A stretch of DNA of 64,000 nucleotides, from the sequence record LC819008.1; one strand, written 5' to 3'. Position 1 is the stretch's first letter. Each line of letters opens with the position of its first letter. Positions 1,566 through 28,446 of the stretch are shown here, piece by piece. The notes below the pieces were generated by a model. The model was not told the DNA's origin and ran no database searches. It worked only from the letters and a program-made list of their open reading frames with translations. The translations under genes and the position numbers were made by a program.

Positions 1566-2426
1566 TTAGTGCAAGTTCGTGCCCATGACTTCATCGGGAA
1601 CGAAATCGCTATAAAGCTTGTCGGCATCCGTCCCAGGTTGGTCCGAATAAACTCGGGAGAAAAGATCCCGATCGTTGACAGACATGAAGCAGGTTCCGGT
1701 AACCATGTCCGACGGATTTTGACTCGAAGCAGGAATCACCGAGAATTCCCACAGATAGCCGAACGACAATCCAGGAGCGCTGGGAAGTCGAGCTTTTCCA
1801 GGAGTGAGCGTCGATGCGACACGGATCGGAACATTCCGACCTTTAGTCACGGCTTCGACGATACTCATGCCGAAATGCATCTGGATTTTCTTGACAGGAG
1901 AGTTCGATGCCTTATTGGAAACGAAATCGATAATCTCCTTCGGATCCGTCATGGTTATTTTCTTTCTGGCGGAGAGAGATGTACCAAGACTCGTCTTGAC
2001 GTCGTTCGGAATATGCGTCACGCCTTCAGGCAGACTGTAGGAGGCAGTGACGATACCGTCCAATTGGGGATCGGATTGTATTGCGGCTGCCAATCGATGA
2101 ACTTCTGCATCGAAGTCCATGATTTCATCGAACTTATCACGCAAAGCCGTGGCGCGTGACTTGAAGCCTTTCTCGTCGAAATCCTGACCGCTGAATTCGG
2201 CCCTCAGTTCGCCGACCACTGTATCGACATCCTTCTTGAGAGTCTGCTGGTACACCTGAAATCTCGACTGGAGATTCTCAGCCGTGGTGAAGTAGTGTGC
2301 GAATTTTTCGCCACGATCTTCTTTCAGCTGTTTCGTAACGTCAACGATTCCCGCGATGTTACGAATCATTGCTGCGATCAGAGCCTTGTGCTCTTCGTAA
2401 CGTTCTTCAACTTTAAGCTTTTTCAT
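1566..2426 (-). CDS. Hypothetical protein, N-terminal coiled coil
   Basis: Long ORF; start moved to ATG 2426 (MKKLKVEE), downstream of the hairpin and AAGG. Confidence 0.75.
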   Translation of the reverse strand: MKKLKVEERYEEHKALIAAMIRNIAGIVDVTKQLKEDRGEKFAHYFTTAENLQSRFQVYQQTLKKDVDTVVGELRAEFSGQDFDEKGFKSRATALRDKFDEIMDFDAEVHRLAAAIQSDPQLDGIVTASYSLPEGVTHIPNDVKTSLGTSLSARKKITMTDPKEIIDFVSNKASNSPVKKIQMHFGMSIVEAVTKGRNVPIRVASTLTPGKARLPSAPGLSFGYLWEFSVIPASSQNPSDMVTGTCFMSVNDRDLFSRVYSDQPGTDADKLYSDFVPDEVMGTNLH

Positions 2427-2452
2427 CAAAATACCTTTTAAAAAGAATACAT

Positions 2453-2482
2453 ACAGACAGATGCCAAATGGCATCTGTCTGT
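2453..2482 (-). terminator. Hairpin terminator ending the winged-helix operon
   Basis: ACAGACAGATGCC-AAAT-GGCATCTGTCTGT, 13-bp perfect stem. Confidence 0.75.
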
Positions 2483-2492
2483 GATCAAGAGG

Positions 2493-2687
2493 TTATGCGC
2501 CTTTAACTTGCTTCTCTCGAATCAAGCGGACCATCCGCTTGTAGACTTCGACGAAGGTAAAACGATATCCTGCTTTAGCCAGAGCGTTTTCAACGTCTTC
2601 GGCCGGAGTCAGAATACCGTTTTTGTTCATCGCGTCCAGAATGATCGCTTCGATCTTGGCCTCGTCGAGTTGGAGCGGAGTCGTCAT
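2493..2687 (-). CDS. Small winged-helix-like protein (Fur/ArgR-like N-terminal pattern)
   Basis: 64 aa; TPAEDVENALAKAGYRFTFVEVYKRMVRL resembles the Fur HTH helices; ATGA overlap with the upstream gene. Confidence 0.55.
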   Translation of the reverse strand: MTTPLQLDEAKIEAIILDAMNKNGILTPAEDVENALAKAGYRFTFVEVYKRMVRLIREKQVKGA

Positions 2688-3004
2688 GACTTGAAGCCGC
2701 CATCGAGCAACATCGGATGAACTTCTCGAACAAGATGATAGAAGTCATCCGTGAGGATGTATTCCTCGCCTTTCAATTCGAGAACGCCCTTGTCTAGCAA
2801 CCAATCCAGATGCATTTCAGCCACGTCCATCGGAAGACTACGAGTCTGATACGCCGACAGCAAACTTTCGATCGTAGCTGGACGATCGAAGATCACGTAG
2901 CGAATCAGCCGGAGCCGATGGTCCATTAGACGAAGCTCCCGACCATAACGAATACAGTCGGAAGCCAGTTCGCGGATTTCCGGATCTTCTTTATTCAGAG
3001 GCAT
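2684..3004 (-). CDS. Winged-helix-like protein
   Basis: MHLDWLLDKGVLELKGEEYILTDDF: recognition helix, Gly turn and wing pattern. Confidence 0.6.
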   Translation of the reverse strand: MPLNKEDPEIRELASDCIRYGRELRLMDHRLRLIRYVIFDRPATIESLLSAYQTRSLPMDVAEMHLDWLLDKGVLELKGEEYILTDDFYHLVREVHPMLLDGGFKS

Positions 3005-3392
3005 CTTTCACCTCAGCAGAAGCCGAGACGGGCGGCGTTGAATGCGTAACGTACTCGGCGATCAGTTCCATCATCGAATCCGTCAGCACGTAGCCCTTCT
3101 TGGTCGGATGGGCCACGCCGTCGACATGCAGATCCACCAGCAAGTTGCTGATATTCATCTGCGGCATGAAGACGTTTGCTTCACGCATCTTCTTGAGCAG
3201 CAGGTTTTCGTTGATGGGTTTGTTTTCGCCGAGATACAACGTACGGACGATGAAACCCGAAGCCGTGATGTTCGCATGGCCGCCGTAACCTTCAATGGTC
3301 TTGGTTTCGACGGATTCCTTGCTACGAAAGCACGCTGCCGCCATCGACTGGATCCGTCGGAAGCCCTTGCCGTTTCGATCGATTTTTAGCAT
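2991..3392 (-). CDS. Winged-helix-like protein
   Basis: NLLVDLHVDGVAHPTKKGYVLTDSMMELI; start moved to ATG 3392 with GAGG upstream. Confidence 0.55.
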   Translation of the reverse strand: MLKIDRNGKGFRRIQSMAAACFRSKESVETKTIEGYGGHANITASGFIVRTLYLGENKPINENLLLKKMREANVFMPQMNISNLLVDLHVDGVAHPTKKGYVLTDSMMELIAEYVTHSTPPVSASAEVKDASE

Positions 3393-3720
3393 TTTTAATT
3401 GAAACCTCAAAAATAAGTTCTCTCATGTCCTGCGTTAGCTTGAACATGTTTCCCGGAAGGGAGTGTACTGCACCACGGTCTTTCAGAAACCGAAACGCCT
3501 TTTTGACATTATAGTCGGTGGCGCTGGTAATCTTTGCATGCCTCAGGTCAACTGCTACCTGAATGAAGTTATAGGGCTGGTCAGGAAAAACCAGTAAGCG
3601 TTTTAAAACCAGGACGCTTAGTCCGCCCTGAAAGCCTGATACCATTGTTGCTTGTTGGGCTAACTCACGCATCTGCGCGTCTGCTTTATTGAGCTTAGGT
3701 TGTTCTTTCAGGGCCGACAT
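3322..3720 (-). CDS. Winged-helix-like protein
   Basis: KAFRFLKDRGAVHSLPGNMFKLTQDMRELI; GGAG upstream; 3' end overlaps the next gene by 71 nt. Confidence 0.55.
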   Translation of the reverse strand: MSALKEQPKLNKADAQMRELAQQATMVSGFQGGLSVLVLKRLLVFPDQPYNFIQVAVDLRHAKITSATDYNVKKAFRFLKDRGAVHSLPGNMFKLTQDMRELIFEVSIKNAKNRSKRQGLPTDPVDGGSVLS

Positions 3721-3729
3721 TAGTCGCTC

Positions 3730-4059
3730 CTAGTGTTTAGTCATCGCCTGAGAAAGAATCAGGTCGAAGATCGACGTCATCTCCGGATGGAGGCGATACG
3801 CCACGTTCGGAAACGAAGTCTTGGTTGCGAGAATGCCCTTCTGCAGCAGATCCGTACATGCGTCACGCAGCATGTCGGTGATGTGGATACTGTCGCATCC
3901 ATAGATAGCGAATGCCATGTCTTGAAGCGACTTGGATTCACCATCCTTATCCTTCAGGTAGAACACTACCTTGTGCTGGGTATCCCAGTTGTCTTGCGGC
4001 TTTGCTGCAATGATGACGGCTTCTGCCATCTGGCGGCGCCACATTTGTTGTGCTGACAT
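3730..4059 (-). CDS. Winged-helix-like protein
   Basis: DACTDLLQKGILATKTSFPNVAYRLHPEM; GAGG SD upstream. Confidence 0.6.
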   Translation of the reverse strand: MSAQQMWRRQMAEAVIIAAKPQDNWDTQHKVVFYLKDKDGESKSLQDMAFAIYGCDSIHITDMLRDACTDLLQKGILATKTSFPNVAYRLHPEMTSIFDLILSQAMTKH

Positions 4060-4068
4060 TTTGTCCTC

Positions 4069-4617
4069 TTATTCAAAAGCCTTCTGTTGTTTGAGGATAG
4101 CGTAAAGATCGATAGCTTCCTGCTTAGTAAGCTTCGACCTGCCTACATGGATGTGTTCGAGGTTTTGTTGTGTCTCGAACAACCACAAAACATTCTTGTA
4201 AAACTGATACAGGTCGCCGATCTTGACGTTGTTGCCTTTGACCTTGATATTGACATCGAGTAGGAATTGCTTACCCTTCTCACCCGTGTAGCTCGACATC
4301 AAACTCACGAAATCAAGCGTCAGCGAATACAGCGTTGGACGATCGCCGATAATCGTGCCCATCGGCTGCCAGCCTTTCAGAACCCCAGCATCGAGCAGGT
4401 CCTGCAAAGCAGTCTCAACTTCTGTCGTCGAGTACTTACCAAATGCCGTAAGACGATGGATGATTTCTTTACCATCGTGTCCTTCCAGATGGCGACTTTG
4501 TTCCGATACCAGCTGAACGATGCATTCTTCAGCCGTCAGATCGCTGCCATACTTGATCGATGTACATGCAACAGCAACCAGCTTCTTGATGACTGCGTTG
4601 TTTTTATCGAGTTTCAT
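4069..4617 (-). CDS. Winged-helix-like protein with an extra C-terminal domain
   Basis: TALQDLLDAGVLKG...LYSLTLDF; C-terminal IKVKG...LTKQEAIDLYAILKQ is shared with 4628-5203. Confidence 0.6.
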   Translation of the reverse strand: MKLDKNNAVIKKLVAVACTSIKYGSDLTAEECIVQLVSEQSRHLEGHDGKEIIHRLTAFGKYSTTEVETALQDLLDAGVLKGWQPMGTIIGDRPTLYSLTLDFVSLMSSYTGEKGKQFLLDVNIKVKGNNVKIGDLYQFYKNVLWLFETQQNLEHIHVGRSKLTKQEAIDLYAILKQQKAFE

Positions 4618-4627
4618 TTGCAGCCCC

Positions 4628-5203
4628 TTAATCTATGTAACGATCTTGTTTGAGAGTTTTGAGAAGCTGACGAGCTTCATCGATAGTCAGCGATGCGTGA
4701 TCGAAAAAAGGGAATCGCGCAGTATCGCCATCGAGCCCACCATCGCGTTCCCAGATCCGAATGAAATACTCAGCATGAGCGTAGAACGCACGTAGTTCAT
4801 CCATATAGACAGCCATGCCTTTAACTCGGATAGGCATGCTGAAAAGTGGAGGAGGAGTCTGCCGTGATCCATCAGGCGCTGCGTTCTTTATCTCAAGGTG
4901 GATTTTCGCGGTACTCATTGCTGCCTTGAAGTCCGGCATGAATTCGTAATTGAGGGTCGCGCGCCTCTGCGCCAGAACCCCTTCTTCAACGAGTTGATTG
5001 AGGGCGAACTCCAGCTGGCCGCGAGTTGCCGGTCTGACGAGGCTACGAACGATACCGACGAATTCATCGATGCCGATTCCATCCGGCCTGCCGAATGAGC
5101 CGAGGATTGCGACGATATGATGTTCGATCGGCGCCTCACTGTGTACTTTGTTCTCAACTGCCGAGACCGCGAGTTCGCTGATGTATTGCGGATTCACAAA
5201 CAT
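4628..5203 (-). CDS. Winged-helix-like protein with an extra C-terminal domain
   Basis: FALNQLVEEGVLAQRRATLNYEFMPDF; C-terminal IRVKG...LTIDEARQLLKTLKQ; start moved to ATG 5203 (GGAG SD, downstream of the promoter motif). Confidence 0.6.
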   Translation of the reverse strand: MFVNPQYISELAVSAVENKVHSEAPIEHHIVAILGSFGRPDGIGIDEFVGIVRSLVRPATRGQLEFALNQLVEEGVLAQRRATLNYEFMPDFKAAMSTAKIHLEIKNAAPDGSRQTPPPLFSMPIRVKGMAVYMDELRAFYAHAEYFIRIWERDGGLDGDTARFPFFDHASLTIDEARQLLKTLKQDRYID

Positions 5204-5252
5204 TTTGGCTCCGTGAAAGGAATTGTAAAGTTTACTACAGGGATTCACGGCA

Positions 5253-5260
5253 GTTATATA
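5253..5260 (-). promoter_or_regulatory. Putative phiKZ-type early promoter variant (TATATAAC)
   Basis: Minus strand ATTTCAGACA-TATATAAC; same context as the TATATTAC copies. Confidence 0.55.
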
Positions 5261-5282
5261 TGTCTGAAATAAAATGCATACT

Positions 5283-5312
5283 CATACACACTGGCGCAAG
5301 CCAGTGTGTATG
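5283..5312 (-). terminator. Hairpin terminator
   Basis: CATACACACTGG-CGCAAG-CCAGTGTGTATG, 12-bp perfect stem. Confidence 0.75.
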
Positions 5313-5320
5313 ATGAACGC

Positions 5321-5641
5321 TTATGCTGCGATTTTAAAATTGCAAATACGGTCGATCTCCAGCCGAGTCCGCAAACGCAGACGCGACTCCTTATGCAGGC
5401 GTACGTGATTGATGGAGAAGATACGACGTTCAACCTTGTATCCCTCCGGAGTCACGAAACGACTCTTCAGGTAACCCCGTTTTTCGAGAAGCTCCAACGC
5501 CTCCATCAGACCGTCAGCAGACAACTTACCTTCTGCATCACGGACGATGTCGGACGAAGTCTTCTCGACCCCGTAAGGCGCTTTAAGAAGATCAAGAATC
5601 TGTTCTTCCAGCGCTGTTAGTTTTTGTTGGTCCAGTTCCAT
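5321..5641 (-). CDS. Winged-helix protein (PadR/ArsR-like pattern)
   Basis: LEEQILDLLK...TSSDIVRD...LMEALELLEKRGYLKSRF...RRIFSI. Confidence 0.65.
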   Translation of the reverse strand: MELDQQKLTALEEQILDLLKAPYGVEKTSSDIVRDAEGKLSADGLMEALELLEKRGYLKSRFVTPEGYKVERRIFSINHVRLHKESRLRLRTRLEIDRICNFKIAA

Positions 5642-5670
5642 TTTCTAAGGTCTCGTAGAAGTTCTTGTTA

Positions 5671-5847
5671 TTAGACCCGTGCGGTGTTGTTCATTGACTT
5701 CTGGTCACCGTGCCTGTTGCGACTCGTGAGACCATTGGGATGAACATCCGATTTCTCGGTTTGTTTGATGTCCTGCCTGATTGCAGGGCTGAGTGGATTC
5801 TCGGCTTTAAAGCCGCCCCACTTTGTGGTGCCGTTTCCTGGTGACAT
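5671..5847 (-). CDS. Small hydrophilic hypothetical protein (58 aa, not in the ORF track)
   Basis: ATG 5847 preceded by AAGGA; translates MSPGNGTTKWGGFKAENP...NNTARV; fills an otherwise empty 300-nt gap. Confidence 0.5.
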   Translation of the reverse strand: MSPGNGTTKWGGFKAENPLSPAIRQDIKQTEKSDVHPNGLTSRNRHGDQKSMNNTARV

Positions 5848-7672: not shown

Positions 7673-7700
7673 TAGACAGATGCCCGAAGGCATCTGTCTA
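7673..7700 (-). terminator. Hairpin terminator with UUCG loop
   Basis: TAGACAGATGCC-CGAA-GGCATCTGTCTA; stem nearly identical to 2453-2482. Confidence 0.75.
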
Positions 7701-27602: not shown

Positions 27603-27983
27603 TTACAGACGAATTTCCATGACCGACAATCGAGTGCCGGGCTTAATGATCACTCGTTCGGGAAGAGGAATACAACTAATCTGTTCGAGATACTTTTTGA
27701 AGTAATACATCGTCTCTTCAACTCGCAGCAGATAGGACATTACATCCGCTGGGAGTCTGCCGAGTCTTTCTCTGATGTCGATTTCAACATCGTCCAGGAA
27801 CTCACACAGGACGTAATCAAAATCGTCGCCATCTCGAACCATTTGCCCTTGCAGTCTTTCGACCAATTCCTCACAGAGTTCGAGATAATCGTATTCTATA
27901 AAAATCGGCTGTTCTTCTCTTAACAACCGACTGATGCGTCTTTTCTCGTAAGTATCACCGACGAGGTAGCGGGTTTCTCGCAT
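27603..27983 (-). CDS. Acidic hypothetical protein
   Basis: 126-aa ORF. Confidence 0.6.
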   Translation of the reverse strand: MRETRYLVGDTYEKRRISRLLREEQPIFIEYDYLELCEELVERLQGQMVRDGDDFDYVLCEFLDDVEIDIRERLGRLPADVMSYLLRVEETMYYFKKYLEQISCIPLPERVIIKPGTRLSVMEIRL

Positions 27984-28333
27984 TTGCGTATCAATCCGAA
28001 AAGCGACAACGGACTAACGTTGTGGATCTCGAAGTCTCCTAATGAATCTAGAAGTTCGAACTGTTGCAACTGTCTAACCATTTGCTTAGCCAACTTCGCA
28101 AGCTTCCGTAGAATCTTGTTGGCCTTTTCAAAAGTATTTCCTTGAGCATAAAGATAGCGACGGGTGCCTTCCAGGTAGTATCTCAAACTTTTGGAAGACT
28201 TCTTCACGCCGAATACTCGGCTCACCCGAAGGTGTTCGTAAAATCCTTCCAGAAGTTTAAAATATCGCCGCTTAAAGCGAACGAGCTTTGGGACTGGCTT
28301 TTTAAAGCCAAAAAGAAGAATGTCTGTTTTCAT
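27920..28333 (-). CDS. Basic hypothetical protein (low GC)
   Basis: ATG 28333 (MKTDILL) just downstream of an early promoter motif; weak SD. Confidence 0.5.
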   Translation of the reverse strand: MKTDILLFGFKKPVPKLVRFKRRYFKLLEGFYEHLRVSRVFGVKKSSKSLRYYLEGTRRYLYAQGNTFEKANKILRKLAKLAKQMVRQLQQFELLDSLGDFEIHNVSPLSLFGLIRKCEKPATSSVILTRKDASVGC

Positions 28334-28374
28334 GCCAATGAAAGGTTGATATGAAATCAACTTACAACAAAGTT

Positions 28375-28382
28375 GTAATATA
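28375..28382 (-). promoter_or_regulatory. phiKZ-type early promoter (TATATTAC)
   Basis: Exact motif, intergenic, downstream of a terminator. Confidence 0.65.
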
Positions 28383-28419
28383 TGGCTGATCAAAACTGGA
28401 ATAAAATGGACATAAAGGA

Positions 28420-28446
28420 TACCAGGAGGCACGAAGCCTCCTGGTA
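28420..28446 (-). terminator. Hairpin terminator
   Basis: TACCAGGAGGC-ACGAA-GCCTCCTGGTA. Confidence 0.75.

Follow-up and report, generated by a model that had tools for sequence, protein, structure and literature searches.

A variable cassette of putative winged-helix paralogues behind a conserved early-type promoter module in the Ralstonia jumbo phage FLC4-4C

The 64,000-nucleotide (nt) stretch of DNA analysed here (the window) belongs to Ralstonia phage FLC4-4C (LC819008.1, 225 kb), with which the region 2400–5700 is identical at 100%; record positions are obtained by adding 124000 to window positions. Together with its relatives FLC4-5C, FLC8, FLC4-11C, FLC6, RSL2, RsoM3USA, SURPRISE13 and RSF1, the phage is placed in the genus Chiangmaivirus (RSL2/RSF1 group) of phiKZ-related jumbo phages. 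An earlier reading, made from the letters and the translated open reading frames (ORFs) alone and referred to below as the sequence-only reading, had pointed to eight consecutive minus-strand ORFs as an expanded and fast-diverging winged-helix family. All eight ORFs were found where that reading had placed them and correspond to the annotated coding sequences gp126–gp133, each with the product name 'hypothetical protein', flanked by a divergent DnaB-like helicase gene (divDNAB), past which lies the major capsid gene, and by more small genes. They are real genes, as relatives carry orthologues and the ratios of nonsynonymous to synonymous divergence (dN/dS) lie between 0.10 and 0.47. The proposed family of eight is reduced to six paralogues, gp127–gp132, whose shared domain converging weak evidence identifies as a winged helix-turn-helix (wHTH); gp133 is probably also a wHTH protein but conserved and separate, and no family tie could be demonstrated for gp126. 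The features of the locus are as follows.

5321–5641, minus strand: gp133, 106 amino acids (aa), small conserved wHTH-like protein with a predicted long basic C-terminal helix, in a separate upstream unit gp134–gp133
5282–5313, minus strand: stem-loop of 14 bp followed by a U-rich stretch, putative terminator of the gp134–gp133 unit; folding free energy (dG) -29.7 kcal/mol, z-score (z) -7.6
5253–5280, minus strand: promoter-like element TATGCA-TTTTATTTCA-GAC-ATATATAAC, with blocks conserved at about -30, -20 and -10
4628–5203, minus strand: gp132, 191 aa, predicted wHTH plus C-terminal (beta-hairpin + helix) x2 domain; paralogue of gp131
4069–4617, minus strand: gp131, 182 aa, predicted N-terminal helix and wHTH (residues 1–112) and C-terminal beta-beta-alpha x2 (123–177)
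3730–4059, minus strand: gp130, 109 aa, family member with a single domain
3322–3720, minus strand: gp129, 132 aa, family member with a single domain, the sole strongly basic one (isoelectric point, pI, 10), with a basic tail
2991–3392, minus strand: gp128, family member with a single domain, probably 133 aa from 3392 (GenBank start 3344)
2684–3004, minus strand: gp127, 106 aa, family member with a single domain and an acidic predicted recognition surface
2493–2687, minus strand: gp126, 64 aa, last gene of the putative operon, its start overlapping the gp127 stop (ATGA)
2453–2482, minus strand: intrinsic-terminator-like hairpin of 13 bp closing the seven-gene unit; dG -23.7 kcal/mol, z -6.8

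Neighbouring genes in the series gp132–gp126 either overlap or lie no more than 10 nt apart, and Shine-Dalgarno sequences precede most of the seven, GGAG in the case of the gp132 ATG at 5203. The sequence-only reading had set these seven between an early-promoter-like site at 5253–5260 and a 13-bp terminator, and both elements proved real: the former reads TATATAAC on the minus strand, and the latter is a GC-rich hairpin with the U-rich tail AUGUAUUCUUUUU, as in intrinsic terminators. A second hairpin of the same type, at 5282–5313 with the tail ...GCAUUUUAUUUC, lies between gp133 and the promoter-like site and sets gp133 apart. In combination, the spacing, the Shine-Dalgarno sequences, the bracketing hairpins and the promoter-like element make it well supported that gp132–gp126 form one operon. 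The stem of the distal terminator, AGACAGATGCC-loop-GGCATCTGTCT (2455–2480), recurs nearly identical with another loop at 7674–7699 between gp137 and gp136; the window thus contains it twice, where chance would predict no copy. Within the operon, the true start of gp128 is probably the ATG at 3392 (133 aa) and not the annotated one. The start at 3344 removes the conserved N-terminal helix of the family, the orthologues possess an N-terminal MLKIDRN... helix in favour of 3392, and the PHROG alignment of gp128 spans residues 7–139 of the long ORF (2991–3410); the upstream start entails an overlap of 71 nt with the end of gp129.

The promoter-like element is one of several in the window. TATATWAC occurs five times, all on the minus (coding) strand, against 0.47 expected, a count reached in 0 of 100 shuffles; the copies have a T-rich block upstream in common, and four of them are situated upstream of genes in DNA annotated as intergenic. 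The fifth, TATATTAC (28375–28382), falls within the annotated 5' end of gp170 (27920–28432), suggesting that the start codon is wrongly placed or that the gene contains a promoter. When the DNA from the gp133 stop (or from an inserted 115-aa gene) to the first cassette gene was aligned for 14 phages, the hairpin stem was found to change in sequence and yet to stay paired through compensatory changes, while TATGCA-N-TTTATTTCA-NNN-ATATATAA(C/T), a leader CGTGAAT-CCTG...TTTACAATTCC and the GGAG Shine-Dalgarno sequence were conserved, the first of these in position as well as sequence. The hairpin-promoter module is thus kept in all 14 despite a differing gene downstream, and TGYA-N-TTTATTTCA-NNN-ATATATWAY is offered as a candidate early-promoter consensus for Chiangmaivirus. 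Early promoters of jumbo phages that encode RNA polymerases carry highly conserved AT-rich motifs of about 10 nt centred near -10, and those of phiKZ and 201phi2-1 are conserved at -10, -20 and -30 (PMC7598289, PMC11512511). By analogy, the cassette promoter appears to be of the early type and would be active early in infection; no published transcriptome for the genus was found in the literature.

The sequence-only reading had rested the family on a motif, L..L...G[VIAY][LAV], claimed for seven proteins. Five of the seven carry it literally (gp127, gp128, gp131, gp132 and gp133), and gp129 (F) and gp130 (C) deviate by one substitution at the first position. The motif is present in one of the 72 other annotated window proteins (18,194 aa), and the five matches observed compare with a mean of 0.04 in shuffled cassette proteins. 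Pairwise BLAST among the paralogues was barely significant and hardly informative, and shallow profiles built from six isolates gave a high hhalign probability for gp131/gp132 (95.5%), with most other links at only 38–59%. Deeper profiles were obtained by adding six metagenomic relatives (L011–L016), in which the locus was fetched via gp133 and gp131 as anchors. With these, gp131 and gp132 aligned over their full length (95.7%, 161 columns), and links were obtained for gp127–gp131 (95.8%, 95 columns), gp128–gp129 (95.5%, 71 columns), gp127–gp129 (92.1%, 93 columns), gp130–gp131 (90.9%, 80 columns), gp128–gp131 (88.2%, 81 columns), gp129–gp131 (79.9%, 94 columns) and gp127–gp128 (75.7%, 62 columns), against at most 2.3% for neighbouring control genes. 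The all-versus-all comparison thus bears out gp127–gp132 at 75.7–95.8% and leaves out the other two, as gp133 reached 53% with the gp131 family (64 columns) and gp126 no more than 2.4% with any family. Likewise, a profile of the N-terminal domain run against the 79-protein window proteome matched cassette members only, the best outside its training set being gp130 (E 0.003) followed by gp126 (E 0.045), and transitive hidden Markov model links join the cassette families via metagenomic intermediates. Judged from these profile comparisons, gp127–gp132 are one paralogous family, gp133 is a distant relative at best, and the membership of gp126 is unproven.

The fold was approached through gp131, for which AlphaFold2 gave a model from eight sequences with a mean predicted local distance difference test (pLDDT) score of 80.8. 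Residues 1–112 follow the order H-H-b-H-H-b-b-H (H, helix; b, strand), where helices 29–37, 49–58 and 64–76 and strands 46–48, 80–83 and 96–99 make up a winged-helix topology, and residues 123–177 form two beta-hairpin-plus-helix units. Foldseek against the PDB returned nearly exclusively winged-helix proteins among the top 50 (PadR, MarR-type AdcR/ZitR, Fur/PerR/Mur, Pex, TFIIE, RPC62 and RTP), with probabilities of up to 1.00, E-values of 0.01–0.08 and template modelling (TM) scores of 0.3–0.5; structure prediction therefore yields the wHTH topology and winged-helix matches expected from the sequence-only reading, albeit at weak E-values, and for gp133 the same elements at low confidence. 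Searching 1.84 billion protein representatives with the N-domain profile (HMMER) gave only 37 matches at E ≤0.001, and the cellular ones (P0040, P0037 and P0049) are multi-repeat proteins. The match to P0040 (E 1.2e-5) covers residues 603–671, where Pfam places MarR at 592–644, and that to P0049 (E 3.5e-4) residues 326–379, with Pfam MarR_2/TrmB at 310–365. Model, structural matches and profile matches converge on a winged helix as the probable shared domain of gp127–gp132; the call for gp127–gp130 and gp132 is inherited from gp131 by homology only. Two functional suggestions were dropped: mimicry of the AbiEi antitoxin, prompted solely by a distant cellular match (P0037), and an ScpB-like function, prompted solely by a sub-threshold match (E 0.0014).

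Searches of the family databases placed none of the eight proteins. Pfam reported no wHTH family even at E up to 1, and no member reached the gathering threshold for MarR (PF01047) or PadR; NCBIfam and PADLOC scans gave no known family, and PHROGs only RSL2/RSF1 groups without function. PDB sequence-profile searches with each ortholog-group alignment and with the C-terminal domain gave no match below E 0.27, the structural search of BFVD retrieved only the FLC6 orthologue and generic HTH proteins, and IMG/VR yielded RSL2 and RSF1 themselves and nothing further. For the C-terminal domain of gp131 and gp132, no relatives were detectable outside the family in the PDB profile search, and Pfam on its members gave noise; this predicted (beta-hairpin + helix) x2 domain is regarded as novel.

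The pattern of conservation differs along the shared domain. Three parts are conserved across paralogues, namely the first helix, the C-terminal half of helix 3, which is buried, and the helix that follows the wing. Helix 2, the turn, the wing and the first half of helix 3 show no relatedness from one paralogue to another and are conserved inside each ortholog group, which suggests a common scaffold with a recognition surface particular to each member. The segment made up of HTH and wing has a net charge of -5 in gp127, +1 in gp128, +5 in gp129, -1 in gp131 and -1 in gp132, and whole-protein pI values lie at 5.1–7.0 except for gp129 (10.0), gp133 (8.8) and gp126 (8.0). Of the nucleic-acid-binding or mimic family put forward by the sequence-only reading, the binding part is plausible by charge for the basic gp129 and gp133 and doubtful for most members, as this segment is clearly basic in gp129 alone; the DNA mimic is not supported by pI values of 5–7, which are not strongly acidic. 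A search for DNA repeats revealed no convincing operator or iteron repeats around the locus.

The two outer proteins behave differently. Within the genus, gp133 shows 78–100% identity, and the figure is still 58% for the relative that is furthest removed. The low-confidence AlphaFold2 model of gp133 (pLDDT 61.7) comprises helices 10–20 and 45–54, a hairpin at 58–77 and a helix at 79–105 (27 residues), and the best Foldseek matches are PadR proteins of the LmrR type (subfamily 2), at 20–25% identity and E of at least 0.04. On this model, gp133 is probably a separate conserved PadR/LmrR-like wHTH protein in its own transcription unit. Residues 72–106 (RRIFSINHVRLHKESRLRLRTRLEIDRICNFKIAA; window 5321–5425) are invariant in six isolates and nearly so in relatives of 72–78% overall identity; these 35 C-terminal residues are far more conserved than the remaining protein and are predicted to form a single long basic helix. 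gp126 (2493–2687) had been likened to the HTH of Fur, a resemblance that was not recovered: there is no Pfam, NCBIfam or PDB match to Fur, and the best PDB match is DtxR at E 0.86. Fur combines a wHTH that includes a wing with a C-terminal metal-binding dimerisation domain, and the 64 residues of gp126 stop directly after the third predicted helix. Its relatives amount to only four clusters among 5.8 billion proteins.

Comparison of FLC4-4C with RsoM3USA, RSF1, SURPRISE13 and RSL2 sets the cassette against its surroundings. The neighbours DnaB (89–95% identity), gp123 (85–99%) and gp133 (85–91%) are conserved, and the cassette proteins reach 30–53% (gp127), 36–59% (gp131), 39–91% (gp130), 51–76% (gp129) and 55–88% (gp128). 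The dN/dS range of the cassette genes given above compares with 0.06–0.11 for DnaB and gp123. The synonymous divergence (dS) itself is, for some cassette genes, far above that of the neighbours in the same phage pair (gp131 2.0 vs DnaB 0.55, against RsoM3USA), which points to allele exchange by recombinational replacement and not to faster drift alone. In some phage pairs, dS of gp131, gp127 and gp130 is 2–6 times that of the flanking DnaB gene (gp131: L004 and L002). Copy number varies between four and nine genes: FLC6 is without gp127 and gp132, RSL2 without gp129, and one metagenomic relative (L015) has nine members. At precisely the position that gp129 occupies in other phages, RSL2 has a gene-free stretch of 340 nt (L002 3458–3793), which may be a decayed gp129 copy. 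gp132 is found in FLC4-4C only among the isolates, and its slot in RSF1 and L011 is taken by a different two-domain member of 213 aa. In two contigs from more distant jumbo phages, of 230 kb and 219 kb, the corresponding site beside divDNAB and PhiKZ_MCP is occupied by single proteins of 640 aa (P0052) and 452 aa (P0048). Each of these combines two to four of the winged-helix repeats with a long linker of low complexity and with the C-terminal domain seen in gp131 and gp132, and further single and double family members adjoin them. No known family was found in these fused relatives by Pfam, PHROGs, NCBIfam or PADLOC, and tblastn against 50,697 phage records gave no match, so that the fused forms would occur in metagenomes only. 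Synteny in related jumbo phages, which the sequence-only reading had named as a check, is clear: in all relatives the cassette site lies beside divDNAB and holds four to nine genes or fused proteins.

Genes on either side of the cassette vary as well. An unrelated gene of 115–118 aa with a VVDGTHR motif and no Pfam match is present at L012 5545–5892, L014 8329–8676, L015 and L016 8328–8675 and L013 7189–7545; it lies between gp133 and the hairpin-promoter module in four metagenomic relatives, and FLC4-4C is without it. The gene just past the cassette terminator (gp125, 1566–2426; same slot in L003, L005 and L011) is also replaceable: the slot holds 286 aa in FLC4-4C, 283 and 167 aa in FLC6, and unrelated proteins of 329–346 aa in SURPRISE13 and several metagenomic relatives, with no Pfam match.

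The explanation favoured here, at about even confidence, is that the cassette proteins act jointly as interacting adaptor modules with one target each, mostly proteins, probably in host takeover or counter-defence. gp127–gp132 would represent a lineage-specific expansion of a unit in which a MarR/PadR-like wHTH is preceded by an N-terminal helix and has a further helix behind its wing, and would be transcribed together with gp126 from the phiKZ-type early-looking promoter (5253–5280) to the hairpin at 2453–2482. Their targets would be host (or phage) proteins rather than DNA and their role an accessory one, while gp129 and, separately, the conserved gp133 would be the candidates for real nucleic-acid binding. 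An interacting set is favoured because of the fusions in relatives, the rapid mosaic evolution, the variable copy number and the early-type promoter; protein targets appear likelier than DNA given the neutral or acidic surfaces of most members together with fast evolution and copy-number variation.

Several points weigh against this explanation. Charge does not rule out DNA binding, since an acidic overall composition is found in many true wHTH regulators, and dN/dS below 0.5 (purifying) combined with recognition helices conserved at the ortholog level would also fit sequence-specific DNA binding. The fold call itself is a convergence of weak evidence, as no Foldseek match has E ≤0.001 and TM-scores are about 0.3–0.5. 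Neither PADLOC nor any other search linked the cassette proteins to defence systems. Furthermore, TATGCA, a spacer of 16–17 nt and TATAAC/T bear a loose likeness to a sigma-70 promoter, and RSL2 and RSF1 reportedly do not replicate in rifampicin-treated cells (PMC5468394); the host RNA polymerase might thus read the cassette promoter.

The serious rival, above all for gp129 and gp133, is that the proteins are phage DNA-binding transcription regulators, one operator or promoter class per paralogue, which time the phage programme or repress host genes. Members of the MarR/PadR-type wHTH fold are mostly DNA-binding dimers, the recognition helix is conserved within orthologues and different between paralogues, gp129 and gp133 are basic, and the genomes of jumbo phages commonly code for 1–15 transcription factors with an HTH or wHTH (PMC7824862). 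This possibility is nevertheless judged unlikely, though clearly the strongest of the alternatives. In gp127, gp131 and gp132 the segment of HTH and wing is acidic or neutral, phages with near-identical promoters and core genes differ greatly in the number and sequence of their cassette genes, and a search around the locus gave no operator-like motif in repeated copies.

Replication-associated and DNA-coating or mimic roles are less likely than DNA-binding regulation. The adjoining divDNAB helicase gene in all relatives, and weak structural matches to replication protein O, a replisome organiser and RTP, could indicate origin-binding, replisome-organiser or helicase-loading proteins that partner this helicase. 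Those matches are, however, no better than those to generic wHTH regulators, such a factor would be expected to be single-copy and conserved whereas nothing else in the region varies as much as the cassette, and no iterons were found, so that a replication role is improbable. About as improbable are histone-like packaging proteins, or acidic mimics decoying host nucleases or regulators: many small related proteins would be made together, and linker histone H1 and ScpB-type tandem winged helices are among the weak matches, but pI values of 5–7 suit neither coating, for which strongly basic proteins would be expected, nor mimicry, for which strongly acidic ones would be, and paralogue-specific surfaces argue for specific targets. 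A speculative further option, drawn by analogy with TFIIE/TFE or RPC62/RPC34 and given little credence, is that the cassette proteins and their fused relatives are subunits of a modular multi-winged-helix factor that docks on the sigma-less multisubunit phage RNA polymerase and confers promoter-class specificity or template selection; if true, it would address how phiKZ-type non-virion polymerases select middle and late promoters. Finally, chance resemblance among unrelated small ORFan genes, compatible with the barely significant BLAST scores and the lack of Pfam matches, is rejected as next to impossible for gp127–gp132 by the motif enrichment, profile-profile probabilities of up to 96% with clean controls, the transitive links through metagenomic intermediates and the full-length alignment of gp131 with gp132, and could apply to gp126 alone.

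For the majority of early genes in phiKZ-like jumbo phages no function is known, and phages of this kind are under development for the biocontrol of plant-pathogenic Ralstonia and Burkholderia. A whole early-looking operon can now be assigned a probable fold, a family and an evolutionary behaviour: a clade-restricted family gains and loses copies, recombines and forms fusions at a single fixed site, and the promoter module ahead of it is unusually conserved. Such a pattern is typical of host-interacting genes and makes the members candidates for host takeover or counter-defence, and the C-terminal domain of gp131 and gp132 is a new target for structural study. In line with the sequence-only reading, which knew of no such array in phiKZ-like phages, the literature on these phages and on Chiangmaivirus held no account of the family, the C-terminal domain, the array or the fused forms; these appear to be new, and the wHTH fold and HTH expansions in jumbo phages are known already.

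Among known systems, the cassette proteins resemble MarR/PadR/TrmB regulators in their predicted H-b-H-H-hairpin topology and in the signature L..L...G[VI][LIV] - wing - Y.LT at the end of the recognition helix; the helices flanking the wHTH recall the dimerising helices of MarR, and the N-domain profile matches fall on Pfam-defined MarR/TrmB regions. They differ in that no member reaches a Pfam, NCBIfam or PDB sequence threshold, in their mostly acidic or neutral recognition surfaces, and in their arrangement as four to nine tandem paralogues or fused repeats, with an extra unrelated C-terminal domain in gp131 and gp132. gp133 shares with LmrR-type (subfamily 2) PadR proteins of about 110 aa the size and the predicted order of a wHTH followed by one long C-terminal helix; its low-confidence model matches them at E of at least 0.04, and it departs from them in having no Pfam PadR match and a C-terminal helix that is strongly basic and almost invariant. 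The promoter element is similar to the phiKZ and 201phi2-1 early promoters in its AT-rich element near -10, its blocks at about -20 and -30 and its place ahead of operons of small hypothetical genes. Those promoters are served by the virion RNA polymerase, whereas RSL2 and RSF1 are reported as rifampicin-sensitive and the Chiangmaivirus consensus is derived here from sequence.

In ScpB/KITE, TFIIE/TFE and the Pol III subunits RPC62/RPC34, several winged-helix modules work jointly, mostly as protein-binding adaptors, which is a parallel to the fused relatives of 450–640 aa with two to four repeats and to the weak matches to TFIIE, RPC62 and ScpB. Unlike in these proteins, the modules of the cassette are mostly separate genes; no sequence or structural match is significant, and a link to SMC, kleisin or RNA polymerase would be hypothetical. 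Expansions of HTH proteins in jumbo phages have been described before, as for the Myb-type HTH proteins of Bacillus phage G (Iyer et al. 2021, PMC7824862), and the RSL2/RSF1 group is not mentioned in the main text of that survey. The Myb-type expansion concerns another domain family, host group and architecture; in both cases, an HTH-type domain has been expanded and is restricted to a jumbo-phage clade.

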